Source of the DNA: Styela clava
Lineage: Eukaryota
NCBI RefSeq assembly: GCF_964204865.1
Contig: NC_135258.1
Span: 14,074,001 to 14,138,000, forward strand
Length of the DNA stretch: 64,000 bases
Direction: 5' to 3'
The position numbers were made by a program, and so were the translations under genes. Numbering within the stretch: the first letter of the stretch is position 1; each line of letters begins with the position of its first letter. This document shows, one piece after another, positions 6,521 through 57,047 of this stretch. Below the pieces are notes generated by a model. It worked only from the letters and a program-made list of their open reading frames with translations, was not told where the DNA came from and ran no database searches.

Positions 6521-6646
6521 CCTATTTGTAAGGCATACATTTAATCTAGCTTATATCCTCCTCCCATGTCAAATTTGACACTTGTATTCCGAAATTTCAG
6601 CAGAGCCTGGGTTTACTGAGCTTTCATTTAATGCCTATAAGCATAT

Positions 6647-7210: not shown

Positions 7211-7877
7211 AGCATTTCAGCTGTCACGCTGCACAACTGGCAGCATGAGAAAATAGACCTTTAAACCACTATCAAAAATCAATCAAATTCGATATCTTAC
7301 GTATTACTAAATTGAATATCTACTTAATTCTGTTTTTGCTAGATTTCACTATTGAACAGGACCTTAATTTAGAATATCCCTATTTTTATCAATTATTTAA
7401 TAGTCTATTGCTGATTATGGAGTCGAAATAAACTTATACTTATAATGAATTTGAAAAATCGGTCTAATTTGGCGGTTCAGGATTCTATATTACTCTCCTG
7501 ATTGATTCACTAGGACAGTCCTTTAGATTTATGGATTTTAGACTTGAATCTTCTTATTCTAATATTGTCTGCTGTAAGAAAACCCGGTGTATCTCAAATA
7601 GAACGAGAGCTTGCAAACTTTTTATAAGTTTTAATTGCATTACAAATTTTACAAAAAATAAACAAAATGCAGAAATGAAATGGCTGTGTATTGAAACTAG
7701 TAGAAAAGCTGGTTATTTGAAGAAACTGGAGGAGAGAACACCGAATTGAGAACACTTCAGGAGTAGGCAGCAACAAATGACTTGATTCACTTCACACTTT
7801 CACCTAGTAGTTAAAATATTAAAGTTGGAGGTAAAATGGCTTGCTAGATGGCTTACTGGTATTTTGCTTTCACATGG

Positions 7878-8373
7878 ATGAATGTTGTATCTCTGGTAAC
7901 ATTTAACAGTTAATCAACAGTTTCCAATTTGGGCTTGTTCATTGATTCAAACCTAGACGGACATGGCATTAGGTATCAGGGTATAGACCCATCAGAATCG
8001 AGCAAAACCTAGTTAGCGAAGCATCATTAGCTATTGCAGTATTGAGATATATTAGGTACGATATTTCAATAATCTTTCAAAACCGTTTATTTCAGCCAAC
8101 TTAATGGACAGAACGTGGTTCCATATAGTAGGTGTCATGGTATTACAACCATTATCTCTACCGATCACATATAAATTTTACTTGTATTTCACAAGCTAGA
8201 CCAAATACGACACCGTACCCACCTGGCTTCCAAAACCTGATTCTTCAACCTCTATGCATACACGTTTTGTGTTATCCTTTCCCAAGTTAATGGCTAAACC
8301 AACAACAATAGCGTGAAAATCCATTTCAACGCGCAGAACGATGAATTTCCTCAAATTATCTTACATTTTGCAC
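7878..8373 (-). repeat. Dispersed repeat, inverted partner of 2241-2705
   Basis: Reverse-complement similarity to 2241-2705, with indels. Confidence 0.8.
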
Positions 8374-10885: not shown

Positions 10886-12274
10886 ACAAGCTTGTACCAC
10901 AACTCAGTCAAAATTTAGTTGGACAAAGTGAGTTGCTGAGAGGGCGCTGTCTATAAACAGAGGTAAAACAGAGTCCTTTATTTTTCTTATACCACCATAC
11001 TGGTTTTGACTGAAAATCTTGAATTTAATTGGGGTTGGCAAGTTTCCTCATATTGATTTTACAAAATATCTGAATTATAGCATCGTATATTGGGTTATCT
11101 GATTTATAGGTAAGCTAATGTGTATTATTCTTAGCAACTGCGTTGCTTCATAATATTGACTTTTTGCTGACTGGGCACAGCTGCTGTCCTGAATATAGAA
11201 CACTAAATTACAGTCAATACCGTTATACAATACAGCAAAAAATATTTATTTAAGCAAAATGGCAGCATCGGTTTAAATTCCCATATATTGATTATTTAGC
11301 ACATAGTATACTATTTCGACAATAAAGCTATATGATCACTGATGTTATGCCTAACCGGCATTTCAAAGACAAAGCAGCTATAGTTACGACTTTGCAGAAA
11401 TGTTTTAGTCAGTGCATTGGACTTTCTAGCAACTAAGTGCAAAAAACATTAGAAAAATACATACTCCTCTATTATAAACTTCTGAAAAGGCACTCAGGCT
11501 TTGAAAAATTCAAGAAAGTATAATTACAGAAAGATAAATTCAGAAAAACCTCAGTCCCGGCCGACAAATTTGCAATTTCGGTACAGTGTACAAAAATATT
11601 TAACCAAGCCTCTGATTATAAAATATCGTGTTTAAAATTCAAAACACACACATTCTACAGATAAAAATTAAACTGTAATGAAGCACTAAAGTAGTATGCT
11701 TATTCCCAACGTATTAGTTCTTTTGGTGGAAGAAACAAAATATGTTATTTATGATTATATATGTCAGTGTTCGGCAAAGACAACAGAAGTCAATGAGGTT
11801 GGGGGATGGTTGGTCAGGACTTCCATTTTAAGACATGATCTGGTACGCATTATTGGATGATTCCATTTTGACTTTATCTTCCCCGGAGCTTTTCCAGAAG
11901 ACAGGGAACGATAATTTGGTAACAGCCCAGACAGGGCGGTTGCGTATTCTGGAGTGCAAAAGGAAGAATAAAAATTTAACAACAATATCACCAAAATACT
12001 TCAAAGTTTCTATATAACAATATAAATACTTTTATTGTCCCCCAATTGCGTTTTTACACTCCATACTATTCAACCGCCCCGTTTCCCCAGGGTTTTAATA
12101 TTCGCCTGTGGCGCGTGCCAAATTAAGATAGAGGCTATATAAACTCAAAATCAGACCAATAAGATATGTTAGGCGAGTTATAATTCTCACAAAACGAAGT
12201 TAGGTGCTAAGTGTGTTTCAATAGTTCCTCTGTGGCATGTTTTGCTTTTGTTTGCCACAGGATAAATTGTATTT

Positions 12275-15200
12275 TCACATAACGTTGTAACGGTTGCTGT
12301 CGCTCGTTTGTAGATCTATGGTGTCTTCTTTTGATTTCCAAAACTGAGGGAAAGAATACTTGAGAAGCGAGGGCGAGTTCCGTCTAACCCTGTATCGAGG
12401 CGGTTGAAAATACAAGAGCCCAATTAACTTATATAATTATCAACTAATATAATTATTGATAGTAATAATACTTACGTTACAAATACAACAACGCCGATTA
12501 CAATGATGAGGACTAAAACAACGATGATTATTGCAGCGATCGCACCACTGCTCAATCCCTTGTTTTCTTGCTTGGCAGTTCCACCGACATTTTCCACGTT
12601 TTTGTCTAAACGCGACAGTTAATAATATTAATTTAATGCACCTGGGTACAATAACATATGCGTGAATATATGTACACACTGTATATATATTTTAAAAAAT
12701 AATGAACTAGCGAGGTCATGCAAAAGCAAAACATGCATTGGAACATATAAAGCCGTTGTTTTTTTCGTTGTTTTTGTGAGGCGGTGTGCGGGGTTATTGT
12801 GTCTGCAGAAAATGGTGTAAGCTCTCCCATGATATTTACCAGTTGAGGCAGGCTTCGTAAGTGCAGTTGTATCGGGCGACTTGTCATTTTTCAGCGTAGT
12901 CGTTGTGAGTTTAGTTGTAGTGGTGGATTTTGCAGTGGGCTTTGGTGTCGTAGTGGTCGTTTGTTGGGAGGTTGTGGCCTTCGTAGATGAGGTTGTCGCA
13001 GCAGGTGTTGTTGTAGTGGTAGTTGTTGTAGTGGTAGTTGTTGTTACCGGAGTCGTAGTAGTGGTGGTAGTCGTTGGTGTTGTTGTTGTAGGAGTGGTAG
13101 TAGACGATGTTGTAGTAGCTGTTACAACGTGTACAACACAGAGAATCATGCGCAAGGAATGTCGAAAAATAATAGCAATGAATAAAATACGTCAAACAAA
13201 ATTCCGAATTTGTTTAAGGTATATTTCAAATGACGGCAAGGGTATTAATATTAAAACAATATAGAATTTTGAAAAATAAATGAAAACTTCCATGATTTTC
13301 TGTGTTGGAACGTTGATAAATTGAGCATGCAAGAAGACACCAATGAAATGAAAACCACACCACATGCCGTCATTTGATTTGTGTTCATTGTGAATAAAAT
13401 TACTATTAGTAAAACAACTACATGTTTCCACACGACAATCTTTACAAACCACCGAATATTTGGATAAAACATTAAAGTCAACACACCAGTCGTTGTTGTT
13501 GAACGCGTGGTTACTTTTGTGGACGTTGTCTGTGTGGCGGTGGTTGTCCTTTTCGTAGTGGAGGCGGGTGTAGAAGTTTTTGTGGTTGTTGATGTTCCTT
13601 CTATTGGTTTCAACAAATTTGATGAATGCATTAATGTTTCGTTGAACACGTTTAGAAGTTGGTGTTTTCGTATTGATAATAGCCCCCATTCAACCCAGCA
13701 TATTTAAAAGTATCTATAAAGGGTCTCAATCCCTCTAACGGTCGACATTAAGCAGCCGCACTTCAATTATATATATTGAAGTTTGTTGATGGAATGCGAA
13801 GTTTGTAATGAAAGGAATGAAGTATGAACAAGCTATGGGAACATAAATTGTGTTAAACTTAAAAAAATAAAATACGACAAAAATGATAAATATCTAAGCT
13901 TCGAGATTCTATCGGGACATTGTATATTGACAACCATGCGTAAAAATCAAAAACCCAATCTCACACTGTACGCAATCAACCATAACAATATGACAACAAA
14001 CTGTTTGTTAGGTGTGGGTGGAAGAACTTACTCGTTGTTGATGACGTGGCCGCGGGAGGTGGCCTGCAATCTGAGTTATGCGTCATTCTGCTATTCCATT
14101 TGAGACTCTTTTCGCATACAACCTCATATACAGGCTCAGTTTTGTAAGATCCCGTACTGTCGCTTACCCAAACGACATACCCTTCAGTGATACAAGTGAC
14201 GTTGAAAACAGAGCCCATCCGATTTCGGCATGTAGGTTCGCTTCGCCTCATTCCTGGCCTGGCGTTGGGAACCGGTGGACATTGGTTGTCTGTTTGGAAA
14301 ATAATAAGCAATAATTTTTTGATATATTGTTTCAGTGCGCTAGTCTATTTTGTTTTCATTATGATATACCTTTTACATTGACGGTAAATCGACAGTACCC
14401 CACGTTTCCACTTTTGTCTCTGGCGGTATAGCTAAATGTCTGTATTCCTGCCGCTAATGAAGCCGGGGATCTCATAGTTGGTACCTGAATATCCAAGTCG
14501 CTGACAGCTGCAAAGAAATTAGGAGATTATATATAACAACTGATGAAATTGAATCATGAAAAAATACTGCGAGTATCAAACTCACCTGTTTTGTCGTCTT
14601 TCCATGTTGGTGTCGTCCACGAATAGCTGGCTGTTGAAGCACATGATGGAAGTGAAATTTCTGCATCGTCTGGACAGTTTTGTGCAACAGGAGGGCTGAT
14701 ATCTGCGAAATGACAAAACCAGTAAGTCAAACAAATTCTGACACGTTTGAACACGCTTTATAAGAAAACAATACTGCTCTTGTTCTAAATAACTGGATCA
14801 GATATGGCTATGAGCAGGGGCACAAACAAAATATGGCCATACAAGGTTTATTACCCCAACTATGGAAACTGTAATTAGACTACTTACCAACATCCGCTTT
14901 TCCGGCGTCATCTATACAAATGTTTCCTAGCGCGAGTTTGCCGTCCCGGCATAAACACTTTTTGTCTGTATCTGAAATCGCTACACACATTTCTCTACAG
15001 TAATCACCATCGCACGGATTATTTTGTGGTTCTGCAATGTAGCGAGTTATATTTATTACATTCTACTCCACACGTAGCTAAATTTAATTTTATTAAAAAT
15101 GGCCGAATGAGTCTGGAATCGTGGATTGTAATATGGTTAAACGAAGGTTTTGTAGCCCTACATTGATGTTTTAATTTTTACTATAGGCCCTACCGTAAAA

Positions 15201-18200
15201 TAAAACTATTTGTTGTATACAGACCAATCAATTGTTTGAAATTTTTGATAACAACTCATTGTAATCAACAACTGCTTTTAAAATTCAACAAAGATTGCTT
15301 ATTGGTGTAAATTCAGAAATAACATAGGAACCCATAAATTTAATAGGCGACGCTCCGGCATTCTCTATTTCGAGTCCAGTATTCGCCAAAGCATTTGATT
15401 CAAATTAAGTCTGTCATCACCCACTACTAAAGACCGCATTTGGCCTCCTCGTGCTGAGTGAAAACATTATTCATTTATACAATGTTGCTTACTGATGAAT
15501 TTCGCATAAAAACTGTTGCTGTATATAGAGAGTGTTGTAACTCGGAAAAATTCTGCTGGTCCATAGGGTGCCATTGAAGGTGCTCCTTCAGTAAGATTAA
15601 ACCTCTCGAGACGACTACTCTTTCCGTCCACGACGTAGGCCATGCCTTGATGTATTTTCAAACTAAAAAATAGATTTTTGCGTGATGTTGCTAGAAAGCT
15701 CATCAAAAGTCCTTTGGTTTACTCTGTAAAATTAATTCTCAAATTGTACCGGCGCAAAAGATTGCTCTTACCGAGAAAAATTGAAACAATTTTTTTATTA
15801 TCATGTCAGCCCGAAAACAAAGCTTCCCTATCAATCATTATATCGAGAGGAACGTTGCTGTGGTACCTTTGTATATATATATACGGGGAGAGTGTGACAA
15901 GACGTTAGAAATTCGGAAGAAAACAGAGACATGTTATTGCGGTAGGAATCCTTTTGAATAGTATCTTTGAAATACTTTTGTATTACATATTATTAAATCT
16001 AGGTTTACATATTATTAAATCGAACCCCATATATATACGAACACATAATTTGACAACAGTATCTACTTTTTTGCAATATAATAAATTTGTTCCAAGATTA
16101 GTAACAACGTTCAATCAGCTTGCATTTGCGATGTGTTGAAAATTCATTCTAGATCAAAATTTAAAAGGTAACTTACTCGATTATGTAGGGGCTGATCCTA
16201 GTGATATAAGCTGAAATATCATATTGTTTGTATTTCTTCTGCTTGGGTGACGTGTCGTTAATTTTCAATAATGCTAAGAGGTCAAGTTCGTATATAATGG
16301 CGCTCTTAGCTTCAGCCACATACAAAAGATCCGCTGGAAATGACAAATATCCGATATTTAAAATTATGTATCAACCACAACTGCCTGGTAACAATGTTGA
16401 GGCAGATAGACTGATGCGAAGTTAAGAAATGAATTATTCGGAATAAATGTAGCAGATTATAAAATTTTATGTGTGGCTCTGGTAGGCTACTACACATTTT
16501 ATTCACGCAATTGTCGATTGAAAATATAGATAGCCCTTCTCGTTAAAAATATACATACTTTTGTAATCGATTGTAATAGCATGAGGCCAATTAAGCTTAT
16601 CCAACACAATTTCTTTTCCACTTCCATCGTATCTACAACGCAATACCTGGCCTTCTCCTTCTTTGGAGAATGTATCCGTCCAGTAGATATATCTGCAAAA
16701 AAGTATAAGATTGAACTACTTGCCCGTTAATCCACAGTGTATAAGGTGAACAGCAAAGAAAATCAACACAGAACGTTTATAAAACTTACTTGTATTTTAT
16801 ATCTTGTGTTATCATTCTTATGCTTGTGGTGTTGCTCTTTCCTGGTTCGGGCTTAACGATTGTTCTACTAGAGGTGCCGTCTTTATTGGACACAATGATC
16901 GTGTCTCTTTCATTGTCAGCGTAAAATAGGTTACCGGTTTGCGGGTCTACAATCATGCTGTTGGCTGTAATGTGGGGTATATTAGTATTTATCATTTACT
17001 CTCTCGAATCCCCGAATCGAACTCAACAATACCAAGGTATTTAAGTGAGAGAGAAATAAAGTATGTTTGAGGACTATCAGCCATCTTAAAAATGTATCAA
17101 ATATAACCAGGTAGAGAAAGGCCTAGTGGTTGCAAAAATGTACCACGGAATGTCATATTTCATCACTGCCAATATTTACTTGAATCCAATAAAGAATCAT
17201 CTTAAATTATTTTTGATTATATAGTTTAAGCACGAAGAGATTCAAGAATATTTTTTTTGTCGAATCATACCATAAGAAGAAGCTATTTGCGTGTATCGAC
17301 TTCCATCTACTGATGCTCTGCTGACAGTTGATTTTTTCTTGTCTGACCAGTACAGATACTTTGAGTTAAGGTCGACGGCGACGGTTACTGCTTTCCATTT
17401 GTGACCTTAACGAAAATGATTTTGTTAATGCTACTTCTCGAAGCCGTGCCTGAGGTTGCATGAAATTTGACGTTTCTCGGGTTAGATTCAATAAAACAAC
17501 AACTTTCTTCCTTCTTAAAACAACATTTTATGTGTCCGATTATATTCATTAGACAACCTACCGAGTGGAACAATGCTGTATTGCAGAGTTGCGTTGTTTG
17601 TAGAATCTGTGATTGGTATTTGGAATACTTTTCCTTGTCCCGCATCGGCGACAAGCAAGTAGTCATCTTCCACAAGAACTGTAAAAAACTGCATTAGTGA
17701 GAAATGATCTTTTGGAAACAGATAGCTCTTTAAAGGATAATTTAATGAACTTACGTGGTTGGCATTTCTGCGTCACAGGATTCAAATGGTATCCGAGTGA
17801 GCATGCACATGATCTCGTGGCGTTAATTCTTGGGAGACAAAGATGTCCACAATCGCTTCCTCCACATTCCCCTGAAGAAGGTTCTGAAAAAAAATGGGAA
17901 TAAAAAGCAGCTAAACGACCAGAGCCAACTGATGTCTAATAAATTGTCGTGAACGTTTCTCGAAGCACCTTATATTAGTTACTCGGTTCGAACAACAACT
18001 GTAACCAAACTCATACCTGTGTCAAGCGAAAATTCTTCATTGTGACTAAAAACTGCAATTCCTCTGGGCTTTCCGCTCAATGTGTAACGGAAAACTTGCT
18101 TTCTTCTCTTAGTTATTATCCAGACTGAATAGAATCGTGCACCTGTCATGCTGTACCTTGCATGGACATCGGAGACGTAGAGATAGTCCTGAAAAATAAC

Positions 18201-21200
18201 AAAAAATGACATAAGACATAACGTACTAAAGGTTTAAAAATCTGAAGCGAGATTGTTTTTTCAACAGTCTGCGGGACTATAAATAAAATTACCATGTACG
18301 CTGCGACACCCCAGAAAATTGAACCTCCTCTGTAGTGATGTTGAGTTTTGTTAGTTCCATCTAGAAGAGAGCTCATCACCATACCTCCATAGCCAGTGAA
18401 GTCCGTCCAGTAAAGCCTGTGCATCGTTAATTTTTAATTAATTATTATCCACGAAAAACTAACATTTTAATATAGAGAAAAAAATTTTTTATTGCATTAG
18501 TTTATAAGAGTATAACTGAGTATGTTTTACTGCAATGTGATAATGCTGTTAAAATTCTGTAATTGAAATTGAGCAGACCTTTATCAGACAGCGAAAAAAA
18601 AAATGGATAAACAGATTATATTATAAACAATAATATTATTCCGTAAACTCGAGAAAAACTGACCAAGTGGTGAAACGCGTGATAAACAAAATTCTTTCTT
18701 GGCCGCTAATCTCTCAACGGTTACGGGCCTCAGAACAATAGCTTCATATAAACAATAAGATTATTCAAGATGAAGACTTGATATAAAAACACGAACTGAA
18801 AATCAGTTAACCATATTTTGTGATCGTGAAATATTTTGAAAGGATATCAAACTGTTTCCGTATTCCCGTGCATCCCGTATTACAAAAGTAATTCTTGAAC
18901 GTGAATAACAGTTTGTATTTTTAAGATAAAAACACACGCTATCAGGTCACGTAGCGATTACTTAATATTCGGCGGCTGACGGAATAAAAAGTCACATGAT
19001 TTTATTTAAATTTTATCTCAAGTGCACTAAGTTTACTTCCGCTAATTCCTGCCACATAAATTGCAATCGAATAACCAGGTATCCGACTACTTTCATTGTA
19101 AATGAATGTTTTGAAAACCAAGATGTGGAACTGCGCATTCTGCATTGTGATATAGAGGGAGTTTTAGTTATAATCGTCGAATAGTTAAAAGTTTAGTTAG
19201 CAAAACTGTCTGGTAGTAGGGAAAGTAATAGTCAGAAATGACATGATGCTGTTGAAAACCAAAAACACACGCTTATGTTACGATTAGTTTCAAGATATGA
19301 CGAAGAAAGTTTCGCTTCATTTTGCGGAAAACCACTTTTCGAATGAGTTTTATTGATTCTCAAAGTTTTATCTCTCAATTTTACCAAAAATATACACTTA
19401 TGCTTCGATTAGTTTTAAGACATGACGAAGAAAGTTTCGCTTTATTTTGCGAGAAACGACTTTTCGAATGAGTTTTACTGATTCTCAAAGTTTTATCCTA
19501 AATTTACAATGACATTCTACACATAATGATTCCTCGGACGCGCGGTCAAAACGTTCTAACAATAGCAAGCGGTTGAATGTGAGCAAGTGAATTACTTGAA
19601 ACAAAACACATTTCTCTGCATAATATGTCCTATGATTTTTCCCAAGCTAAAATCATAGCATACCTGTCATCTGTGTAATCAATGGTGATTCCAGTCACGT
19701 CGAAAACGTTTGGAAACTTGAAAAGAGTTTTCGGACTTTTTCCTGCCAAGTCTGTGACGATGATTTTAGATCCTAATGCTTTATATGTGGAAAATATCAA
19801 CAGTCTGAAAAAAATATTATTGAAACTTTTCAATAATTCTGATGATATAAAAACTTGGAATTGCCAAGAGTTTTGACAAAACAATTGATCAGTCCATTGA
19901 AAAATTGAAGCGATTTTGCCACAATAGAAATTTTATAGACATGTATGTAACTTTCAAACGATTTAAGAATAATTATACCTGTTTTCAGGTAGTGATAACT
20001 ATCTGACTACATTGGTACAACCCCTCGGGCGTGTTTTAAATTCATTTCGAAAGTTTAGTATCGACGCCCTTCGGTCTATAAGCTAGTATTATTTAGCAGA
20101 TTTCAGATAAACTTTTTACAAAGCAGCACTACAACAATGAAACATACCGTTTTACTGAATGTACTGCAAGCCCATATGCTGGATCTGGAGCTGTCCTGTA
20201 AACCGGGGTGTAATAGTTAAATGTGTTTTCCGCAGCCATTACCCATTTAAACTCGGAATCCGTCCAATATAAATTATCTGTTTTCCAATCATAAGCTATA
20301 CATTCAACTCCATGTGCCATTCCTTCGAAATATCTCTCGCCCTTTTTCTCTGTCATACTCCACACACCAATGTATTCAGACCTAAAGTATTTGAAAAAAC
20401 AAATGAGGTCGTGACTTTACAAACATTTGCTGCCGCACTTATGAAGGCCTTTTACGCGATAATCAATGCTAAATACTTTTGTACATTAATATGATTAGCA
20501 CAAGTATATGATATGTTATGTCCTCCCAAACGAGTTTTTTTCGTTATCGTTTTTTTATCCTGAATTTCATCTAGAAACCAAATATTTCTCTCTCTAAGGC
20601 GGATATTGTAGCAAGTACGTGTCTTTGAATGTGTCAAATTGCCTTGACACACATCCATGCTTTTACTTTTTTGTATATATACCTGTAGTCTGTAAAATAT
20701 AATCTTTTTTTATTGTAATCTGCTGCAAGTGCCCAGTACTCTGTCATTGAACGGTTTGACCCGGTGAGAACAGTAACATTGAAAGATCCACCATTATCGG
20801 TCTCCTGCTTGACAATCTCAGGATCGGCCTAAATTTATTGAAGCGTTAAATTGACGTCTATTTAGTATAGTTCAATAAATGCAATAAAAGTTCATTCAAA
20901 TAAACTTTGCATTACGCACCTGAACACGTAATAAGTGGGTACTTTCGGATGCGGCATCATAATTTGTCCAGATAACAAGTGAATCATCGGCTGTAAAATA
21001 TATGAAGAAATTTTATATCGTATTTTGAAAAATAGTTAATGAAAACCAACACGAAACATGCTAATTTATGGCATCAACAAATAATTGATATGTTCCTAAT
21101 TAAGTGCTGATATTTTTAACACAATTTTACAGTGTTAGATAATACGAGCCGAAATGTCGAATTCAAAATTGAAGTAAAGTGAAATAAAAAGAATAAAGAA

Positions 21201-24200
21201 ACACAATAAATTATTGTGTCTGTCCCCACAATATTAAAAGTCATATCAAAAAATTGTGTTCAAGAAACATTAAAGAAAACATTATAAATAAACAGATAAG
21301 ACATTGCCAATAAAAATAAATTTACTCCACTTTGTTCTAGATTTACGTCTTTCTTATTCATATTCTACGTATGAAATAGGATCGAAAGAGTTTATGAAGT
21401 AATGTTTAATAAACAGAAAAATATAATCTACAATAGCTTACGGCATTTTGAAATATTGCAATATTCCCATCGAGTTTTGTTATTTATAGTGTAGCACCAT
21501 GTTCCTCTCAAATCGTTATCTGGATTTCTAAAAGAAAAATTCAAGGATTAATTCCAAGCAATTAAAATCTTCATTATTCGGTTAATTTATCTGATGGGAT
21601 ACTTTTAGAAATCTCTACATTTTATAGTGTTAGAATAGTTCAATAGCCACACTTCCACAGAGTTTTAATCAAACTTAAGGCATTTGCTTTTTTCCTTCCT
21701 CAATCATAACTTTATTTAAACAATAATAATTTTGAGAAATATTTGCTTACGATGTCACCGAAACTGTATTATTAACACGGAATTTATATATTTCATAATA
21801 TTACAATGTATCTATTACCTAAACTGTTATTATTTGAAAGACAATAGGATCATGTGACGAACTAAAGCGATTCTGATTCCCGTGTATTTTCTGATATGAA
21901 TTACGTACGTTATTGTTTATGCCAAAATATAAAAATAGAATCTTTGTATTCAGATTTTTTTCCGATTTAGCGTACTTCTACATCAGCATATTTTGCCCGT
22001 TCCGTTATTGAAATAATCTTTCGGGACAAGTACACAATAAGACGACCCATTCATTACTCACAAAATGCTGATATATTTTTAGATAGATAGATATCAACTT
22101 TCTGTCCGTATATCTCAGCTTTTCAAGGTTTATGAAATTCTGCAATACTTATATTATTTTTCTCTGAAACAATTCACGTCTATATTCAACAATCAACATT
22201 CAATTATCAATCTTAAAATACTGAAAAGTGGTATGGGAGGATAATATATACATTTATTTCTTTGTTTATTCTGTATGATAATTCAATACTATATGACTTC
22301 AAAAACGGGGGTTAGGCATTGTTTTCATAGTTTATGTAGCTATTGTATATTAGGGTCTAATAATAAAGCGATATAGTTACCTGCAATAATTGTGGTGTCC
22401 ACCATCTTTCGGCACGTGTTTTGGTTTGTGTGGCTTATCAGTATCCCATCGCTGACACGTCGTTCCGGAACCTGTCACATCTCGCGTCCCTCTGTACCAT
22501 GTACTTGGGCCGTCGATGCAATCATCTAAGCACAAAAATCAGAGATAGCTTTAATATGGGGATGACGCTGTCCATGGGCGTTTATGCGCAAATAAATCGA
22601 ATATATCGCTTAGAATTCGAAATTTTGTCACACTTGTTCAGGTTCGCCATATCATTTACTTCGTAAGTTTAATATTAATAAAAGCGCTTTGTTTCGTTTC
22701 CAGTTTTATTTTTTAGAATTCATTGAGTACTTTTATATACGTCATTTTTGGGTTACCATGATGCTTCATCGATTGACATCATAATAAAACAAATCATATA
22801 ATCATATAAAAATCAATCATAATAAAACAATTACAAATAAATTGAAAATTTGTTTTCTTACTATTTGTATTCAATTAAAAAAAAAATTATTAAATCAGGT
22901 CAATTCAATCAAAAAATACTAATTGTACTTTCTTATTATATATATGTTGTTCATATTCTGAAGTTTAGATCACTTATAGCTTTGCACGTAACAAATCTGT
23001 ATAACATATTCTCATTGAACAGAAATTAGTTGATGGTATTCGTTATCTCCAATCTTTCGCGTAAGCTATAAATGTTGGCCATAATATTATTGTTAATAAC
23101 GTAATTAATGATTGACGATACTTAATCCATTAGTATTTATTATGGGCCAAAGGTCGATGACGAGTTAGCGATTTGTTGTAGAAAGTATCAATTAGTTTAT
23201 TGAAAGATAGAGTGCTCGCGCTATATTAACGATAAAAAGAACATTCGATAAAACTCCCATTTAGTGACATCAGCGAAACCAAAATGGTATGTTCGATAAT
23301 ACATAGTTCATATACGGGATAATTCATAGGGTTTTTAGGTAGCCAAGTTTCAACAAAGTGAAATCAAATTGCAATATGCTTTGCTCGCAGTTGCCGCTCT
23401 CGCTCGAATCCGTATGGAGAATTAAGAAACATCATTAGTCGATTCATACTTATAATCATCAGACGCAATATTCTCCGAATTTCGAATATGATTTTCGTGA
23501 TACTGTTAAATTATTAATTTCATTATTGAATCATAAAGACGAGAAATATTGTGATAAATACCATATAAGTGACTTGCAATTATTTTCAAAGTTAATTTAT
23601 AAGGAACGAAGAGCCGCGGGCTATGACAGAATTTCAGGAAATGGACATTTTTGGATTAAAACTTCAGGAAGCGCATTCACGCTTTCCATATATGATCTGT
23701 TAAATACTCTTCACTCAATTTTTAATTTTTTATATTGTTGTCTGGAATAATTCTTATTATACTTTGTTTTGTTCACTTGATTCCTACAGGTGTCGAAATA
23801 AGAGTTTTCAAAAACTTTTTTTTAGTTTTATCAGCGATAACTCAAAAAGCACAAATTTATGGAATTGTTACGAAATCTCGAAAAAAATGTCCAAAGACAA
23901 TAAAAAAAATGGTCGAAATGCGATAGTTTAATCTTTTTTGCAATCTTTCATCGTCGATGGTGGGAAAATTGCCTTTCTATATATATAATGTATACGATTA
24001 CAATAAGTAAAACGATAAGTTGAATTGCCAAATTAATTGTTCATTATAGATCATATGAAAATCTGCAAAATCGTTGATAACATTTGTTGAATTTATTCCA
24101 AATTGTGTTAGAAAATAATCACTGATTATGGCTTCTTTTCATTACAAAATAATATTTACAATGCTCAAAGGTGACTTCGTATCTTTTCGTGACTTTAACC

Positions 24201-24955
24201 CTGTTATTTTGCTTTATTTATTTAACATTAAATCACGAATCTAAGCAAATTTTTGTAAAAATATCAAGAGTTAGTGTGGCGACAACACGGACGTAAAATT
24301 CGGAACATGAAAGATAGTTATTTGTTGCATATCTCTTGTCACGGAATTTGCTGGTTTGCCCCGCGGGCTATCACTGTGAGAGTTAGAATAAGGTTTCATT
24401 TATGTCTCGTTGGCAGGTAATTTTGGAATTTTGTCGACCAGACATCTAGTATATTGTACTTAAACATGCGTCATGCCAACACGTCATCGCATCAGCAGAC
24501 CCCAAATTGCGTCCAACTGAATATTTTCACACTTGAAAACATCAAAATTGATAAACGGTTTATCTTCACTTGTAAAATATTATGTCATAAAGCCAGCTTA
24601 TAAAATGTATAATCTCGACAATATGCCACGATCTACTAAAGAAATGACGCGATATCGCGGGGTAAATTTCGAAAATCTTGGTAGTTTCGAAGAAATTTAT
24701 GAAAAGAGCATTCTCGAATACGCATTGTTGTTGGGACATTCTCGATTCTTTGCACACAAATTACAGAATCGTATGCGAAGTTAATAATTTTACATTTTCT
24801 GTCACAAATTTAGGTAATGTACATAATAAAATTATAAGTTATGCAGAAAAACATTTCAAGTGATTACCTGTTGACGTTGTTGTAGAACCCTGTACCCGCA
24901 CGCACGCCACGCAAAGGATGAGCAACGTGGCACCAATTACATAACGGTGATCCAT
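12275..24955 (-). CDS. Gene A: type I membrane protein SP-kringle-(YWTD propeller-EGF)x2-HYR-sushi-mucin-TM-short tail, 1172 aa, LRP-like ectodomain
   Basis: 24 GT-AG exons in frame (3519 nt): 24868-24955 (MDHRYVIGATLLILCVACVRVQG signal); 22381-22525, 21442-21527 (kringle, CQRWD..HNYCRNPDND..WCYT..RWEYC); 20920-20990, 20683-20828, 20148-20381, 19664-19804, 18293-18416, 18017-18188 (propeller 1); 17755-17883 (EGF); 17562-17678, 17271-17405, 16790-16964, 16559-16692, 16177-16333, 15493-15662 (propeller 2); 14888-15031 (EGF); 14586-14702, 14370-14507 (HYR, DISPPVAQNCP...YTARDKSGNVGYCRFTVNV); 14032-14289 (sushi); 13487-13600, 12840-13118 (Thr-rich); 12476-12605 (TM, GAIAAIIIVVLVLIIVIGVVVFV); 12275-12389 (tail, ...SNRYNVM*). 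Confidence 0.9.
12900..13118 (-). repeat. Coding (ACN)n low-complexity tract encoding a poly-Thr mucin stalk
   Basis: Plus strand is rich in GTT/GTA/GTG triplets; the minus frame reads TTTPTTTTPTTTTTTTTPVTTTT... Confidence 0.9.
19280..19498. repeat. Direct duplication (about 95 bp, two copies) in gene A intron 7
   Basis: CGATTAGTTT.AAGA.ATGACGAAGAAAGTTTCGCTT.ATTTTGCG...ACTTTTCGAATGAGTTTTA.TGATTCTCAAAGTTTTATC occurs at about 19281 and 19407. Confidence 0.8.
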
Positions 24956-27900
24956 TCCGCTGCGAAGCTCGAAGAATTTCAATAATTTTTATTTTCTGTT
25001 GCTCGCTTAGATCACACTCGAAGAAAATCAAATTTTGATAGTATATATTTTTTATCGCTTACAGCTGTGCGTGCTGGCGTATATTCTAGAAATACAATCT
25101 AAAATTGCTGTAGCTATTAAACAATAAAATTGTTAGGTTGCAATATCGAATCTATTTCACACATCAGTATTTCATATTTAAGTAAGCTAAAATACATATA
25201 TATATTATAAATTTAAAATCTCCATCAATTATCAATAAGTTAACAGCATTACTATAACACAAACCTGCACATTCCAACTAAAGTGTTATATACACACGCT
25301 GATAAATAAGAAAAAGACGATTGTTCGCGTCATGGACTTTCATATAGTTTTACGCCTGGGGCGGTGTAACCTACACACGAATTTGAGTCTTAGTGAATTA
25401 AAACTAACGCGAAAAAATCATTGCAGTTTGAGATAATTACCAGTATTCAGGAATCGGTATAACTTTCTTTTCGTATCAATTACCGATTATTATTATCATA
25501 GATTAAAACACAATGGAAATCATTTCGATTCTGCGATAAATTGATTTGTTTTAGAAATAATTCGGAATATCACTAGTGATTAACTGAATAATGCCTCAAT
25601 CAAGGCGTTGTCGTCGGACCCGTAAGAAGTCTCGCGAGCGTTCTCAGACGAGAGTCACCAAGTGCTAATCACTAATCACTGCTAAATACATAAGTAACAA
25701 ATGCAATGGCAATGTTACTGGAGATATTTTGAAATCATTGCAGACCAATAACAGCTACCTTATTCCAAATCCAAAGCTATTTATGTATACCAAGCATATA
25801 AGTTAAAATTGGTTTTTACTAGTCCCTGTCATTAGTGTAAAAACAATTACGCACTTGGTGTGAATATGAGCAATTTTTTAATTTTTCTTCGCTCTTTTGT
25901 GCCAATTGTATAGTATCAAACCTAAGAAAAAAATGACGTTGTTTAAGGTTACTCCCTACTGTTTGTAATATTTATAGCAATTCAATGATATCTCCTGCCA
26001 ATAAAAGCAGTTCCTGACCCTCATTGTAACTCTCATCAATCTTATTAACAATCGGACAGTCTTGACTACTGATTCGAGGTTATAACTTTGCTTGGAATGA
26101 ATGAATGAACAGACAAATAAATATATTGTGAACCGATCTAAATTATATACGGTATCTCATTATCGTGGTTATCAAGAGCGATTCATCAATACAATTTTTT
26201 ATGTCCAGTCAAGTTGGTAATAACTTAACATACACAGATTTTATTTTGATTCCTTGATACTGTTTGAACTTATTTTGTGTCATAGCGCTGTTATTTTTAA
26301 TCGAACTACAGATAAAATACAATTCCAATTTACAAATGCTGTTGTTGTTTTTTATATTTTGTCTGACGAGGATTTCGTATAAGATACTTAACAAACTGAA
26401 ACAAAAATTAAATTTTCAATAAGAAACAAGTCTATTTGTTGTTTATACGTGGGATCATGATTTAGCAGTACTAAAGATCTCAAAAATCACCCTCTTCGAA
26501 AACGTTTTTTGACTGATTCAGCGATTCTGTTCTACAACGACTTAACATGATTATATGTTTTAGATCCGCCAAGTTCGTTGTATACCATAATTAAAATTTT
26601 CTTGGTTTTAAGGAGGTGTTTACAAACTTCCCACAAGAGCATAATGTCGCTGTTTGGAGAACTTATACTGAAAATGATTTAGCATAAAACCTATGTTTCA
26701 TTACACCTTTATGTTTTTGTCATCTATTACGAACAAATAAATGTGGATATGATGATATGATCCCCTCCGTGACGTCATCAAGTTCAAGAGTCCAAGAGAT
26801 TCCGTCCGCGACACAGTATTAATTTGTCAAAGCGCAAAGTTAAAAACAAAGTTTTTTATAATTCGTCATTAAACCTTGCGTTGTTGCTGACGCAGAGAAC
26901 GAAGTATTTGTTTACGTCGTTTGCAGACCTCGCGAAGTTTCCGTGATTCGTGTCGTGATAAATTGTTTCCCGGAAGCAATATATATTTGCCAAAATGTCC
27001 CTGTTACTTATTCTATGTGTTGACCCAAGTAAAAATAATCCTTACATTTCCCTTGGCATTCTAATTTTAATTTCCTTGTCATGGTGAATAACCAAATGTG
27101 TAATCAACGTTTTCGTTTCTAATGATGAACAACTGTAGAGATAGGACTTCTTCTGATTTTTTTTCTGTCGAAATGTTCTTATCTTTGCTTATTTTACTTA
27201 TTTACTGTAACGGATTTCGTTGCGTTCAATTTAACAACTCGTTTCGTCACAATTAGAATATTTTTTTTTAAATTTAATACTCAATTGACTGTACAAAATT
27301 TACTACAATATAACCATTAAAAATGCGAATTTTGGAGTGAACAGAATAAATTAAACGACACCATTGCACGCAGAAAAATTTTCAAAAAATGAATGAATAC
27401 TTCCGACTGTATACAGTGGTTTTAGGCAAAAATCGAAATCTTATATCACTTTAAATCGAGGAGATTATGTTGTTTCAAGTGCTTCATAGTGCGTGAGACA
27501 TTGAAATAGTGACAATTACGTACTCGCGTGAAATAGGAAATAAAAGAAATTTATGACACCCGCAATTAAACATGAACATGAGTGAATTATTTGAAGTGAT
27601 GATGACTCTTAGTAGCGAGTTTAACGAAGATTTTCATTACCGGTAATTTATTTTCTTCTTATATTAAACCGGACATGACACATCAAACCGAAAATTGATA
27701 ACCACTCAGGACATTTTCGTAATTAAGTAGAGGCGTGTATAAAAAATGGGCGTGTACAATGTCGTTTCAAACTAGAAAACTCATGCAATCGAAGTTTGAC
27801 GTCATGTCCGGATCGATTTTAAGTTATCACGTCAATTTAGTTAACGATAGAGAATATTGAAGATGGATAAGACAATCAATACGAATTTTATTTTAGTCTG

Positions 27901-50756: not shown

Positions 50757-53700
50757 TTATATGCAACTTGCTTTCTTCTTTGATAACGCCAAGCACGAAG
50801 ACTTGCATTTCTTTCGCAAGCACGGATTTGGAAGACGTTCTAAATAAAAATAAAATAGTTATATAAAATATTATAAATGAGGCATATGAAGGTGGCATAG
50901 GTAAAATAGTTGCGATTTTATTATATTAAAATCTTTTGCATGTCACGCCATATTACTTGATACATACCACACTCTCTGTTAGGTCATGAATCAACTGACT
51001 TTCAAACGTGTATATGTATTATAATACATATCATGTTTTAGGGAAATATAGCCTATAATGTGTTATATATACTCACTGATATATTTTCTGGTAAATGATC
51101 TACTGTAGACAGACAAGCTGGACGCTTTAAAGAAAACTGAAGGCCCAAAGTTGACCAAAGCCTTTGGCCCAGTCGCGCCAAGTTTGTATCGCAAAAGATG
51201 TAATTTCCTTTCATCAGAAATATAAGCGAATCCTCTATGAACTTTCAATCTAAAATTTGAAAAGTTATATTGTAACTTCTAATACAATGTACCATTATAT
51301 TCATGTAAAAGATAAAAAAAAAAATTACTTTGTCAAAAAGTATTTCTCTGAATATAAATAGTCCATGAGGTCGTTCCGTTTGTATTTTTTAAGTGGAACT
51401 GGTGCAATGAGTTTCATCAAAGGAATTTCGTATATAGAACCGTCTTTGGAATCCATCACGTATAGCTTGTTTCCTAAACAAAAAAGTGTTATTTGTATGC
51501 GGTCTTGTACTAATTCTGAAGGTAAATCCGATTATAATAAACATAAAAATATTCGTACTTTCATAATCGATGTCGATTCCATATGGTAAGTTAAGATTAT
51601 CGAGCACAACTTGCTTTCCACTTCCATCAAATCTGCAGCGAATTACTTTACCTGATCCCTGTTCTCCCATGGTGTCGGTCCAGTAAATCATTCTGAAAAA
51701 AACTAAATGTTTATCTTAAGGAACAAAGCCCTATATTTTTTTATATTTTTGCATAATTCGAAATATTACATTTGTAACTGACATATTTTCATTGTTTATG
51801 ATTATTGAATTACAATGAATTACACTTTCTATGAAATAATTGTGCTATCTGTATATATACCGGTATATGAAATTTGCTATTGGAAAAGATGTTTTAAATA
51901 TACATTAAAAACATTGTGACGTACTTTTGTTTGGAATCTACCGCAAGCGCTTTCACGTCTGAGTTCGTTTCTTTATTTTCAACGATAACTTTTTTGTTTT
52001 TCCCATATCTATTCATAAAGGCAATATCGTTGTTCTCATTAACATAAAAGATGTCTTTTGTGACAGGATCCAACTTTATATCTTTCACTGTAAATCAGAG
52101 AAATAAATCCGTAGAAGTTTAGAATCGGAAAAAAACATATAAAACGATTCAAGAAAATTCATGCAATAGCCTACTTACCTTTTCCCGTTACTGAAGATCC
52201 TAGAGGTTTAGCATCTTTATTAAGTAACGCAAATCTAACTCTTCCCATTTTGAAGTCCGATGTATCAGAATCATACATATAAACCGTGCCGGTGGAAACA
52301 TCTGTGGTCATGGTGCTGATATGGTTTGTTTTACCTAAAAATTGAAAAAAATATGTCAAAAAAACTATTTTTTTTGGATAAAATATTATTAAAGCAAGGT
52401 ATAAAATAGAACACTTCAACTCACCGAAATGAACAACACTGAACTCTCCTTTTGAAGATAAAGGAATCTGATATACTTCACCCGAGGCATCGTCGAGTGC
52501 CAGCAAATATTCATCATTGACAATATCTGAAAGCAGTTTGTAAAATCGTCAGCGCCTCGAATAACAATTTTAATACATTTTTCGCCTTCAGCCTTTGGCG
52601 CATGTTTATCAAGACCAATATAGAGAAACTAATCCACAAATACAGCTGTGTATGTTATGTGTCAAAACAACACAAAATAAACAAGAAAGGCAGCTCTTCT
52701 GTTGTTGAACTAGGAAATAAGTATTGACTTACTTGGAACACATTTTCCAGTTTTCGGTTGCAATTTATAACCTGGAGAACACACGCATTTGAAACCTTTT
52801 TGATTTGGAAGACAAATGCCACCACACGTTTTCTCGCATATGTTCGATTCCAAAGTTCCTGAAACAATAGACGCCATACAAATTTATATGAAGAATTTTA
52901 ATTAAATAAAATAACAATTTAATTAAAACAAAGGTGCGTTTCTCGTAATCATAGACACGAAGGCTAAATCGAAGTATAACGGACATGCAATCTGTCACAG
53001 TAGACTACCGAAACCGTCACAAGGCGCCTTAAATTCCTTAATGACGTCATTACACACAAAAAACGAATTTCATAGAAATTTTTGAAATAAATAAATATAA
53101 TAGCCATCTAACGAAAAATACAATCTCTAACCACTAAAAATGCCAAAGCAATTGGTCCAGTACTTGATGAGAAAAGAGATTTTTTCATAACAATACGAAG
53201 AACAAGTGAGCTATGCTCAAATATATGGACACGTAGCGCCACCCAATGGCAATAATTTTGATGACGTCATAGCGAAAAAAAAGTAATAGCCTTCTGGAGA
53301 AAAATTTTGTCTTTAACCACTGAAAATTTCAAAGCAATTGGTCCAGTATTCGAAAAAAAAGCGATTTTTTTAAAAATGGAGACAAATAATAACAATAACA
53401 ACATAATATTGAAACGATCGTTATGTCCACTAAACGTGTCCAAAAATACCAACAAGAACAACGACAACATAATAACAAAACTTTCCAAATGTACATTTCG
53501 TGTCCAAAAATTGGTTGACGTATATCATTAATGTCCGCGTGCGGTTTGGATACGACTGTCACAATATAATTCTGTCTGAAAAGTAGTTGCTATGGTATAC
53601 GTATTCAATTTGTATGTAGGCCTGCCTGCATACCTTCTAGTAATTATTCATGCATGGCAAGCTCCGAACTAACAATTACAAACGTAAGTTATAGATTTTA

Positions 53701-56700
53701 GTTTTTTCTCAGCTCGTGACTTATTTTTAGATACCGATGGAAATTCGATTTAATATTACTCTTTTATTCCAACAGAAATGTCTAAAAATAATGCATCGAT
53801 CAAAACGAATTTATCTTACTTTCTGGTGAACTCTTATCTGCTAATATAGCAATCCCATGCGGTAAATCCGGTCTGCTAAATGTGAAGATTTGATTTGTTC
53901 CTTTCCTCAAAATTTGAACATGATAACGAATGTAATCAAAATAATTGTATCGTTTTTGAGAATCAGAAACATATATGTAATCCTGAAACACAGAAAATAT
54001 AATAAATATAATTTAAATCCTTAATATCAGATTTAAGGATTGTTCAAAATGTTCCGTATCCTATATCCTCACTTGAAAAAAGCTACTTGGTTAGCCTTGT
54101 GATTTGGAAAGATATTACAAAGTTGCAAGCAGCAAGATTTTTTTTTCATCATTTCTACGTGAATATCTGATTTATTCCAAGTTCGATTTTGGACGATGTA
54201 TAGATGTAAAACACAAATATCATAAAATCATACTTCGTGGACGGCTATATCCCGAAGTTCGGAAGATTTTTGGAAGTAATGTTCTGTTTTATCGGATCCA
54301 TCGAAACGACAACTGAGAATCTTGCTTGCGTAACCGAGATAATCTGTCCAGTAAATTCTGTAGAAAAGCATAAGCATGTATAATAGATGCGAGGCATAAC
54401 ATGGGCACATAGCATGAAATGTGCAAGTTATTCTGTACCGTTCGTCATCAGCTGCAAGTCCCGTAACTTCGATAACATCCGGGTATCTAAATAGAACTTT
54501 CGCATCTTTTCCAGCTAAATCAGTCATGATAATTTGTGTGTCGAAAACCTTTGAATCTTTTCTGACGTAAGTTGAAAACACCAATTTCCTTTTAAAAAGT
54601 ATATTGCGTTAAATATTCATAATGAAACAATAATTATGGTTTAGGATTTAGCTCATTGACGTGTACAGCATAGGTATGAGCGGGTTCATAAGATATGCCT
54701 GAAGCGTTATTATCATACGAGACAATTCTGTTAAGAAATATAATCTTGTGTGGCATGACAATGTTCATATGATATCTTGCAAAAGTTTATGTAAACTTGC
54801 TTCTCACCTATGTTTTTGTAAAACCGCTATAGCCTGTGGCTTATAAGGTTCTGTGTTGTATATGGGAAATTGAGCTTTAAAATCCTTATCGGCAACCCAC
54901 ACTGATTTTGTTTTGCAATCTGTCCAGTAAAAATTTTTGGTAACATAATCCTGTGCTATAGAGTGTATGTCACCCACTTTTCCTTGCAAGTGACGTTCGA
55001 TTGCCGAACTTTTGACATCCATGATACCAAAGTAGTTATCTCTGAAAAACGAAAAAGGAATATCAGCGACGTTTTTTTTTTATACTTTTTATCTCAGTGG
55101 CAGGATCTCGCTTGTGATAGTGATTCGTGTAATTCTATCCAAACGTTGGAAATAACCAAGCAATAAATGAAATTTTTATCTATTTTTTATTATTCTCGTG
55201 TACATTTAAAGATAGCATTTATAACAGAAAAGAGCGATGGCGAACAATAAGAAATTTCCTATGAAGCTTTGTATAAGAAAATAAGGGAGAAAGATCAAGA
55301 TTAGTAAAGGTTATGATTACAAAGCAAATAATATAATAGACTTCATTGCCAAGACGGTATGTAGACAGAAATAAATGCCTGGTACAAAATGCTTCAGGCG
55401 TTTTGATAGATCTTATGAAATGAACCAAAATTATTTTGTAATTTATACGTATTTTGTGAATAAGTACATTAAATGGGTTATTAGACTCACTTCAAGTCTG
55501 TGAAAAAGATTTTTTCTCCTTTCTCATCCGTTTCTACTGCCTTGAAAATAGAATTTTTGTGAACTTCAACGTGCATTCCACCTGCCGGTACGTTGTTTTG
55601 TGATGAATATTCTGGATCAGCCTACAGATTCAAAATTAGAAAAATATTAGAAAAAAAGATATGACGTGAAAAATATATAGGATATAATTTCCATTTGAAA
55701 CTTCCATTTTATTTTTTTTCAGTCTATTAAATAACTACAGTTTTTCGGTAATTTCAAATTTTTGACAAATGTTCATTTCTGATGAACTGTCGATATGGCT
55801 ACCTAAAGAACTTGAAACTCGCAACTTTTAGTTTTTTTTTAAGTTATCCACCAACCTTTGCATGATCAAATATAGAACTGTTTTGTTTCGCGTTGTATCC
55901 TGCCCATACTACTAAAACTTTGCTTTCTGTAAAATTAAAGTGAAGACTATTTAGTAGAGACATCATAAGTAAAAAATTGTATGAATATTTTCCTTTCCAT
56001 CAATGTTAAAAAAATCATATCAGTTTGATTCATCTTATAATAGGACCAGTTTGAAACCTGATTGAAACGGAGATCACGGCCACGTTGTGTAGCGCCACCC
56101 ACACGTAAAAACACTTCATATTGATATGCGTCAGGTCTAGACGAAGCATTTCATAATGAATCCTGTACTTGAAACGTTTTATGACTGAACGGTGATATTT
56201 GTAAGTAGTAATGGGAATCGCAATACAATAACTTACCGCATTTAGGAAGGTCACAGTATTCCCATCTAACAGCAGGATCGGTGGTGTAACACCAAGTGCC
56301 TCTAGGATCTCTGTCTGGATTTCTGAATTTATTGTTCAAATATTATTAGCTTACATTACTAAATATTGCACTAGAAAAACGGGAAGAGCTTTTATTATAA
56401 AGTTATTATTTCGTCATTTATGTTTAATAAATTATGCGTAACTACGTGGTCTAATTCACGCATAAATTCAAATACTTTTAGCGACGCCCTACGTCACCAT
56501 ACGTAAAGCCCGGTACCGAGAAACATTTGAAGTTGTGCGCATTTCCGGTAAAAAATATTCCTTGGCCTTTCCGTCTATAATGACCTCAGTTAGTTTTATA
56601 AAGGTGCTATGTAATTTAGTTTTGATACTAAATTAAAATCAAATACTTATAATTTAGATACCTGCAATAATTATGATCACCACCATCTTGCGGGATTTTC

Positions 56701-57047
56701 TTCACCTTATGAGGAAAACCAGTGTCCCATCTTTGACAAGTATGGCCAAGTTTTGTCAATGATCGTTTTCCAGTATACAAATAACTTGCACCGCTTATGC
56801 ATTCTGAAATTATATTTTTATTTGGTTAATTTTGAAAACCTTGAACAAATCATGCAAGCAGTGTCTATTTAATGATATTGTTTAGAATATTAATACTCGT
56901 TTTCTATCCATTAGAATGAAATGATTTAATTTTCCTAATATTAGTTTAGTATAAGTAGAATTGCATGAAAACTAACATACCTTTATCTGATTGACAATAA
57001 CCAATGGAGAGAATTATTGCAATTACGGTCAGTCGTAAAGTTTCCAT
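50757..57047 (-). CDS. Gene C: secreted paralog of gene A, SP-kringle-YWTD propeller-EGF-YWTD propeller-truncated EGF, 749 aa
   Basis: 17 in-frame GT-AG exons (2250 nt): 56981-57047 (METLRLTVIAIILSIGYCQS signal); 56662-56803, 56237-56322 (kringle); 55856-55926, 55491-55621, 54808-55041, 54439-54588, 54234-54357, 53820-53982 (propeller 1); 52733-52858 (EGF); 52425-52526, 52179-52334, 51925-52087, 51559-51692, 51329-51473, 51077-51249 (propeller 2); 50757-50839 (KRLPNPCLRKKCKSSCLALSKKKASCI*). Confidence 0.87.
53020..53510 (+). mobile_element. Nested copies of the same interspersed repeat in gene C intron 9
   Basis: Core ACAAGTGAGCTATGCTCAAATATATGGACACG...CGTGTCCAA (53202-53443) is flanked by an older related copy (AAAGCAATTGGTCCAGTA at about 53146, CGTGTCCAA at about 53500). 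Confidence 0.65.

Follow-up and report, generated by a model that had tools for sequence, protein, structure and literature searches.

The 64,000-nucleotide window of the Styela clava genome analysed here (NC_135258.1, positions 14,074,001 to 14,138,000; about 33% G+C, with no runs of N) carries on its minus strand a mosaic receptor-like gene, hereafter gene 1, together with a tandem paralogue, gene 2. Gene 1 is a single expressed gene and corresponds to S. clava LOC120340152 or a near-identical allele. Its product is a type I membrane glycoprotein in which a signal peptide, a kringle, two YWTD propeller-EGF units, a HYR domain, a CCP-like module and a Thr-rich stalk precede a transmembrane (TM) helix and a cytoplasmic tail of about 37–39 residues. 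At each of the 23 junctions a splice-site scan located a GT-AG pair that keeps the frame, the acceptors at 13600 and at 15662/17405 being set with the help of an alignment to the Phallusia homologue P0003. The resulting 24 exons, each bordered by AG and GT, run from 24955 to 12275 and sum to 3519 nt, or 1172 codons plus a stop. A preliminary description of this DNA had arrived at a model of identical length, and the kringle, propeller-EGF units, HYR domain, Thr-rich stretch and TM helix that it named were all recovered on the minus strand. The boundaries it gave, 12275–24955, do contain the full exon chain but fall short of the end of the gene, which reaches at least 11828 through an alternative last exon (11948..11828).

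The 5' half of gene 1 is documented by RNA. Four runs from three studies were compared with window positions 19600–25400, and spliced contigs were present in all four, whose CT..AC ends read as GT..AG in minus-strand orientation. Their joints lie at 24868|22525 (in each of the four runs), 22381|21527, 21442|20990, 20920|20828, 20683|20381 and 20148|19804, and no extra exons were seen in RNA over this interval. Exon 1 (24868..25115) holds the signal peptide, its ATG at 24955 and the 5' untranslated region (UTR), which RNA contigs follow out to 25115. Exons 2 (22381..22525) and 3 (21442..21527) each encode half of the kringle and have RNA joints on both sides, and the kringle is spliced directly to exon 4 of the first propeller; the joints then continue through exon 7. 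Two long contigs (2523 nt and 3166 nt) span the 5'UTR, from 25115 and 25104, to 19663, and both run on past this position with letters reading LYWTDFTGYG, which is the start of exon 8; in the 3166-nt contig, 2083 nt lie beyond 19663. One mRNA thus contains the signal peptide, the kringle and propeller 1. The depth of the contigs does not allow expression levels to be ranked.

The remainder of the chain was assessed through database proteins. P0178, retrieved by a word-based search with P0003, is the S. clava protein XP_039264367.1, formerly named 'LRP2-like isoform X3' and now 'uncharacterized protein LOC120340152'; it matches the window in 14 pieces at 88–100% identity. We regard the 3' half, from exon 8 on, as part of the same chain because the introns around the HYR domain are short (78–185 nt) and all in phase, because RefSeq isoforms P0178 and P0188–P0192 carry the modules from kringle to TM helix within one protein, because Phallusia proteins likewise hold kringle through TM helix in a single chain with long Thr-rich stalks, and because four intronless transcript contigs of 3.5–4.2 kb from other species encode more than 1000 aa each. 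A Kringle match is present in all four of these contigs and a HYR match in two (the cluster of P0198, and P0205), and a TM helix was found in the transcript-contig proteins inspected (P0152, P0184, P0198 and P0205). The view that one chain is encoded by one transcript, as the preliminary description assumed, is therefore upheld by RNA for the 5' end and by the RefSeq isoforms for the whole. An artefactual gene model, in which the kringle or the HYR-to-TM exons would come from a neighbouring gene, might draw on the fact that junctions from exon 8 onward are taken from models and orthologues and that exon 22 appears in none of the six isoforms; against it stand the exact joints of exons 1–7, the in-phase HYR introns and the isoforms and transcript contigs in which kringle through TM helix share one frame. 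Such an artefact has been largely refuted and retains a negligible probability, and the merged gene model was dropped on account of the RNA joints. Full-length analyses reported below were performed on the database proteins P0178 and P0003 in place of joined window exons.

At the 3' end, exon 20 (14032..14289) encodes the CCP-like module and the start of the Thr-rich stalk. The stalk is continued by two cassettes of phase 1-1, namely exon 21 (13487..13600, 38 codons) and the predicted exon 22 (12840..13118, 93 codons), an open frame with in-phase AG/GT borders. Thr, Ser and Pro together make up a fraction of 0.73 of the 37 in-frame residues of exon 21 and 0.76 of the 92 in-frame residues of exon 22, and in the 1172-codon model the Thr-rich stretch amounts to about 130 residues. 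Exon 23 (12476..12605) supplies a juxtamembrane segment and the TM helix, which is also seen in the homologue model. The RefSeq isoforms (1041, 1043, 1079 and 1081 aa) end in either of two similar, duplicated and mutually exclusive tail exons: 24a (12275..12389; ...FPQFWKSKED...RYNVM, stop), present in P0189 and P0190, or 24b (11828..11948; ...FPVFWKSSGED...AYQIMS, stop), present in P0178, P0188, P0191 and P0192. The six isoforms in the P0178 cluster differ by exactly exon 21, which is skipped in those of 1043 and 1041 aa, and exon 22 is missing from all six. Splicing varies both the length of the stalk and the tail.

Introns at the module borders are uniformly of phase 1. This applies to the borders between signal peptide and kringle, kringle and propeller 1, propeller and EGF, EGF and propeller 2, and EGF and HYR, and equally to those between HYR and CCP, CCP and stalk, the stalk exons themselves, and stalk and TM helix. 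Phase-1 introns between modules are the classic signature of exon shuffling, and the family of gene 1 is a clean case of it.

For the probable mode of action, the tail tells more than any other part of the protein. Both tail exons retain a YxxΦ motif and an FWK-acidic motif. Among the 21 TM-bearing rows of the family, a C-terminal YxxΦ (no more than 6 residues from the end) occurs in 15, long-branch members included, and (F/L)W(K/R) followed by acidic residues in 12; neither NPxY nor PPP[ST]P was found in any of the 21 tails. A YxxΦ at the very end of a short tail is the form taken by the sorting signals of LAMP and CD63 proteins. In LAMP-1, LAMP-2 and CD63, which are unrelated to gene 1, the GYxxΦ signal similarly stands at or next to the C-terminus.

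Propeller 1 is encoded by exons 4–9 (18017..20990; singly 20990–20920, 20828–20683, 20381–20148, 19804–19664, 18416–18293 and 18188–18017) and propeller 2 by exons 11–16 (15493..17678; singly 17678–17562, 17405–17271, 16964–16790, 16692–16559, 16333–16177 and 15662–15493), the predicted splice sites of the latter set agreeing with P0178. Each propeller has six blades and is followed by an EGF module with six Cys, in exon 10 (17755..17883; FXa_inhibition, 5.2e-05) and exon 17 (14888..15031; EGF_LRP2, 6.6e-04), respectively. All twelve blade motifs of the preliminary description were found in open stretches: LVIWTN, LYFTD, LYWTD, LIFST, LYWTD and LYVSD in propeller 1, and LLVAD, LYWSD, LFYAD, IYWTD, LYVAE and AYVVD in propeller 2. 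When Pfam was run exon by exon over 20 open stretches, Ldl_recept_b matched weakly, in two propeller-2 exons only (1.2e-03 and 5.6e-03), and not at all in the propeller-1 exons; in full-length P0178 it reaches 32.7 bits (cut-off 21).

An AlphaFold2 (AF2) model of P0003, built from a 16-row alignment with a mean predicted local distance difference test score (pLDDT) of 73, shows the propellers at pLDDT 80–93 with 24 strands each, fitting six four-stranded blades, followed by a disordered stalk and a TM helix. The top matches to this model in Foldseek were LRP6 E3E4, LRP6 E1E2, LRP4 and LRP2 (about 1e-41 to 1e-37), and at the sequence level residues 178–643 of P0003 are colinear with LRP6 P1E1P2 (1.9e-23). 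Fold and colinearity bear out an LRP-like double propeller, the propeller identity to LRP6 being only about 20%. The LRP5 and LRP6 ectodomains share with gene 1 two six-blade YWTD propellers with an EGF after each, in a type I membrane protein; in contrast to LRP5/6, gene 1 has two propellers rather than four, lacks LDL-A repeats, has a short tail without PPPSPxS, bears an N-terminal kringle, and continues after the propellers with HYR, CCP-like module and mucin stalk. Drosophila cueball, an LDL-A-less YWTD-EGF membrane protein that came up as a look-alike at 0.76 in a protein-atlas search and is treated as a lead only, has no kringle, HYR or CCP; the atlas otherwise returned generic YWTD clusters at 0.78 or below, which were not used as evidence.

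The absence of LDL-A repeats, already remarked on in the preliminary description, is seen in two ways: Ldl_recept_a gave no match at E ≤ 0.1 in P0178 or the homologues scanned, and a regular expression for the LDL-A signature gave 0 matches over gene 1. A receptor for lipoprotein or yolk uptake, of the LDLR, VLDLR or vitellogenin-receptor kind, would be in keeping with the YWTD-EGF modules and with names given by automatic annotation, 'vitellogenin receptor-like' and 'LRP2-like' among them. These names, however, are similarity labels only, neither gene 1 nor the family members scanned have LDL-A, and no tail has NPxY. We consider such a role most improbable, and it was dropped because the LDL-A repeats are absent. 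Lacking LDL-A, the propellers cannot take part in an LDLR-type acid release of LA-bound cargo. The propellers of LRP5/6, LRP4 and nidogen act as binding platforms, and by analogy it is more likely that those of gene 1 are themselves the binding platform.

The kringle is matched by Pfam at residues 32–106 of P0178 (67.6 bits, cut-off 34.3) and, by exon, at profile positions 1–52 (exon 2, 5.8e-08) and 52–79 (exon 3, 6.4e-10). It has the six conserved Cys, and its best solved relatives among the matches listed are plasminogen K1, HGF, prothrombin, apo(a) and ROR. The exon 3 segment RNPDNDLRGTWCYT...RWEYC aligns with plasminogen K1 and K4, with both Asp of the D-x-D, the Trp, the Tyr and the Arg-Trp retained. 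The Asp-x-Asp and aromatic residues we take to be the lysine pocket of lysine-binding kringles, so that a lysine-binding kringle is plausible on the basis of these residues. The kringles of plasminogen, HGF and apolipoprotein(a) have in common with gene 1 the six Cys and the NYCRNPD-x-D...WCYT...RWEYC core with both Asp and the aromatics; unlike those proteins, gene 1 has only one kringle and is anchored in the membrane, and it lacks protease and PAN domains. The S. clava genome gave 11 matches to the gene 1 kringle exon, the nearest of which is gene 2 at 60%.

Kringles are numerous elsewhere in this genome, with at least 107 exon-level matches and dense clusters at C9:2.15-2.34 Mb, C16:4.10-4.16 Mb and C5:23.82-23.83 Mb, and the S. 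clava genome has a large kringle expansion. A different mosaic, joining a leucine-rich repeat and seven-transmembrane receptor with LDL-A and a kringle, was seen in the oyster Saccostrea echinata (P0221), which matched only through its kringle.

The preliminary description had called the kringle module Kremen-like, and this is not supported. Kremen1 and Kremen2 do resemble gene 1 in being short-tailed type I membrane proteins with a single N-terminal kringle, but neither WSC nor CUB, both part of Kremen, was detected in P0178 at E ≤ 0.1. The kringle lies nearer to plasminogen and HGF, and no Kremen chain was present among the 60 matches listed in the structure-chain searches. The genome moreover has a separate Kringle-WSC gene of its own (C1:3502273-3503150; L005 ~6250-7910, minus strand), in which a two-exon kringle is followed by a WSC exon. 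This is the Kremen-type module order, the search there having covered Kringle and WSC, and none of the 11 own-genome matches to the gene 1 kringle exon is the kringle of that gene. Descent of the gene 1 kringle from Kremen was dropped on the strength of the plasminogen/HGF-like matches and of the own-genome comparison.

These observations bear directly on a role as a Wnt/Dkk-pathway modulator, in which the protein would combine in one chain the functions of Kremen and half of LRP5/6 and clear or sequester Dickkopf, Wnt or SOST-like ligands. The propellers are colinear with LRP6 P1E1P2, the closest folds being LRP6 E1E2 and E3E4, including complexes with Dkk1 and SOST; a kringle sits in the same chain as these LRP6-like propellers; an endocytic tail would suit ligand clearance; and the genome contains a marginal Dickkopf_N match, at 25.3 bits just above the cut-off of 25. 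Set against this are the plasminogen/HGF-like character of the kringle, the missing WSC and CUB domains, the separate Kringle-WSC gene, the lack of PPP[ST]P in all 21 tails and the low propeller identity to LRP6. The many lineage-specific paralogues, with kringle-less and secreted forms among them, would also be unusual for a core signalling part. We judge a Wnt/Dkk role improbable. Likewise improbable in our estimation is the more specific idea of a tunicate fusion of both halves of the vertebrate Dkk-Kremen-LRP6 clearance complex, in which kringle and propellers would capture Dickkopf, Wnt or SOST-like ligands for YxxΦ-driven removal and the secreted paralogue would act as an antagonist.

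The HYR domain is encoded by exons 18 and 19 (14370..14702; singly 14702–14586 and 14507–14370), which match by exon at 0.013 and 5.5e-06; in P0178 it occupies residues 789–873 and scores 38.9 bits (cut-off 21.7). The sushi module that the preliminary description placed after it is borne out in part only, by structure and not by profile. No Pfam family was found for exon 20 at E ≤ 1, and no Sushi match in P0178 (E ≤ 0.1), P0003 or P0012. The AF2 model of exon 20 (pLDDT 80.8) resembles CCP modules: in a structure search (VIA) the best match was a CCP of MASP-1 (Z 7.2, root-mean-square deviation 3.3 over 70 residues), and nearly all of the best 50 rows listed were CCP-bearing chains. Foldseek also put CCP modules on top, yet with weak E values of 0.017 or above. 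In nine of nine aligned rows C3, C20, C32, C58, W64 and C74 are invariant, giving five Cys and one Trp, one Cys more than in a CCP. The sushi assignment, resting on the model, would hold at the level of the fold only.

SVEP1 and SRPX/SRPX2 share with gene 1 a HYR domain directly followed by a CCP-type module, but the CCP-like module of gene 1 differs from those of HYR-sushi proteins in escaping the Pfam Sushi profile and in its fifth Cys. In precomputed Pfam annotation, Ldl_recept_b, HYR and Sushi also occur together in proteins P0234, P0271 and P0272 of the corals Oculina and Pocillopora. The coral 'LRP6-like' proteins P0234 and P0271 thus resemble gene 1 in carrying YWTD propellers, HYR and Sushi in one chain, but have no kringle. 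The pairing of YWTD with HYR-sushi is not unique to tunicates; the addition of the kringle is.

It is here that a role in adhesion has to be weighed. The protein would then be a matrix receptor anchoring epidermis or haemocytes to the tunic or the extracellular matrix, or a surface mucin; its propellers would bind matrix as that of nidogen does, and its tail motifs would function in sorting or in contact with the cytoskeleton instead of the uptake of ligands. HYR, CCP and mucin stalks are common in adhesion proteins, the coral proteins P0234, P0271 and P0272 have a similar combination, and a secreted paralogue exists. However, a YxxΦ such as that retained at the C-terminus of 15 of the 21 tails is found more typically among trafficking signals, and the Pfam scan of P0178 found no matrix-type domains (laminin G, FN3 or VWA). 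We hold adhesion to be unlikely, yet more probable than the other alternatives.

Searches with the 77-aa exon 6 against 1.84 billion representatives (phmmer) returned 158 matches at E ≤ 0.001, and 20 family rows head the 96 matches to P0178. The family rows with names come from Styela, Ciona (LOC100179640, 1164 aa), Clavelina (many), Phallusia (two) and Oikopleura dioica. Oikopleura and three ascidian orders are represented, and the family therefore spans the deepest split among tunicates. Ciona LOC100179640 and Phallusia CAB3263507 are 47–53% identical to P0178 over 83–100% of its length, with the same module order and shared tail motifs. Kringle and Ldl_recept_b occur together in 10 rows of precomputed Pfam annotation, and the eight that carry an organism name are all tunicate; among the matches no non-tunicate protein had both kringle and YWTD repeats. 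When a hidden Markov model built from the family kringles was run on 173 proteins from the phmmer step, it gave 12 matches, none of them in amphioxus, hemichordate or other non-tunicate LRP-like proteins. The genes form a multigene family that is so far tunicate-only. As the preliminary description had anticipated, automatic pipelines have named gene 1 and its kin LRP2-, LRP4- or LRP6-like.

A quick tree was calculated from 18 family rows and four hand-picked outgroups, leaving the other matches aside and with support from the Shimodaira–Hasegawa-like approximate likelihood ratio test (SH-aLRT) only. The tunicate clade is recovered with SH-aLRT 100, and its first split separates a kringle-less pair from the kringle clade (100). 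Within the latter, four Clavelina genes fall together with gene 1, Phallusia b and the 1164-aa Ciona protein (89), Phallusia a belongs to a second group (99), and gene 2 pairs with one relative (100). There are at least three old paralogue groups in the kringle family.

Gene 2 (50757..57047, minus strand), identified from translations and a database match, encodes two propellers with EGF1 and a truncated EGF2 as well as a signal peptide and a kringle, but has no HYR, CCP, stalk or TM helix. From its sequence the product is predicted to be secreted. It corresponds to S. clava XP_039263035.1 ('LRP4-like', 749 aa), with 77–100% identity by piece and at least 93% in 14 of 17 pieces. Exon-6-like sequences occur at seven places in the Styela genome, among them two double-propeller-like genes of greater divergence a short way upstream of the window on the minus strand (C10:14038000-14055000), which are 27–43% identical to P0178 in pieces resembling exons 6, 14 and 16. 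No kringle match was found near this pair in the own-genome Kringle search. Together with the pair in the window they form a tandem array of at least four genes.

Of the readings considered, we favour, tentatively and with a likelihood somewhat short of even, that of an endocytosed cell-surface recognition receptor. The LRP-type double propeller and the kringle would form a ligand-binding head, and the HYR domain with the CCP-like module may provide a second recognition surface. Alternative splicing of the two mucin cassettes could set the distance of the head from the membrane. Coupling of the receptor to clathrin adaptors would run through the C-terminal YxxΦ and the FP-x-FWK-acidic motif, and it is because this YxxΦ tail is conserved that we propose a recognition receptor cycling through endosomes. 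The secreted product of gene 2 might serve as a soluble decoy or opsonin, competing for the same ligands or presenting them. The preliminary description had offered a Wnt/Dkk modulator and a scavenger or recognition receptor side by side; the conserved C-terminal YxxΦ suggests that the latter fits better.

Several points weigh against the recognition-receptor reading. The role of the protein as a receptor is inferred from sequence and models. YxxΦ is a motif of only four residues, and six of the 21 tails lack it at the end, among them that of Oikopleura (a partial protein) and those of the two kringle-less members of the family. For the lysine pocket, the reading leans on general knowledge of residue roles, and the kringle region of the P0003 model has a low pLDDT of 44–65. 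The full-length model is itself that of P0003, which the tree places in a different paralogue group from gene 1. Finally, for the junctions from exon 8 on, for exon 22 and for the alternation of 24a and 24b, the evidence consists of automatic RefSeq models and orthologues.

Two further features of the window were noted. A separate gene lies between gene 1 and gene 2 (42800–47155, minus strand) and has its own signal peptide; its translations contain CAP/SCP-like motifs at about 45.5–47.1 kb and a Cys-rich exon at 43.2–43.5 kb. On the plus strand, positions 4545–6103 hold long open frames of 209, 236 and 88 aa with a G+C content of 0.435, against about 0.33 around them, and the last part resembles, by eye, the C-terminal dimerisation region of hAT transposases.

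A search of the full-text literature for the architecture, the locus names and the accession found no description, subscription journals and supplements lying outside that search. The preliminary description had allowed that the architecture might already be widespread and described: it is widespread in tunicates and automatically annotated there, but a description in print was not found. In a Botryllus atlas, a 'Kringle-domain containing protein', which might belong to the gene 1 family, is mentioned as a marker of hyaline amoebocytes (PMC13635237). What was known is that these genes stand in public annotation as LRP-like or 'uncharacterized'; what is new is a tunicate-restricted branch of YWTD-EGF proteins with a new order of modules.

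The family alone opens no long-standing question. It is old, has membrane and secreted forms, and has gone unstudied under misleading LRP2-, LRP4- or LRP6-like labels, which calls for caution with counts of 'LRP6' genes in tunicate Wnt studies. The membrane receptor and its soluble paralogue make a testable pair. In vertebrates, YWTD-EGF receptors hold a central place in synapse formation, lipoprotein uptake and Wnt signalling. Tunicates, the sister group, have built a receptor family of their own on this propeller pair, losing the LDL-A repeats and gaining a plasminogen-type kringle, a HYR domain, a CCP-like module and a mucin stalk open to alternative splicing.

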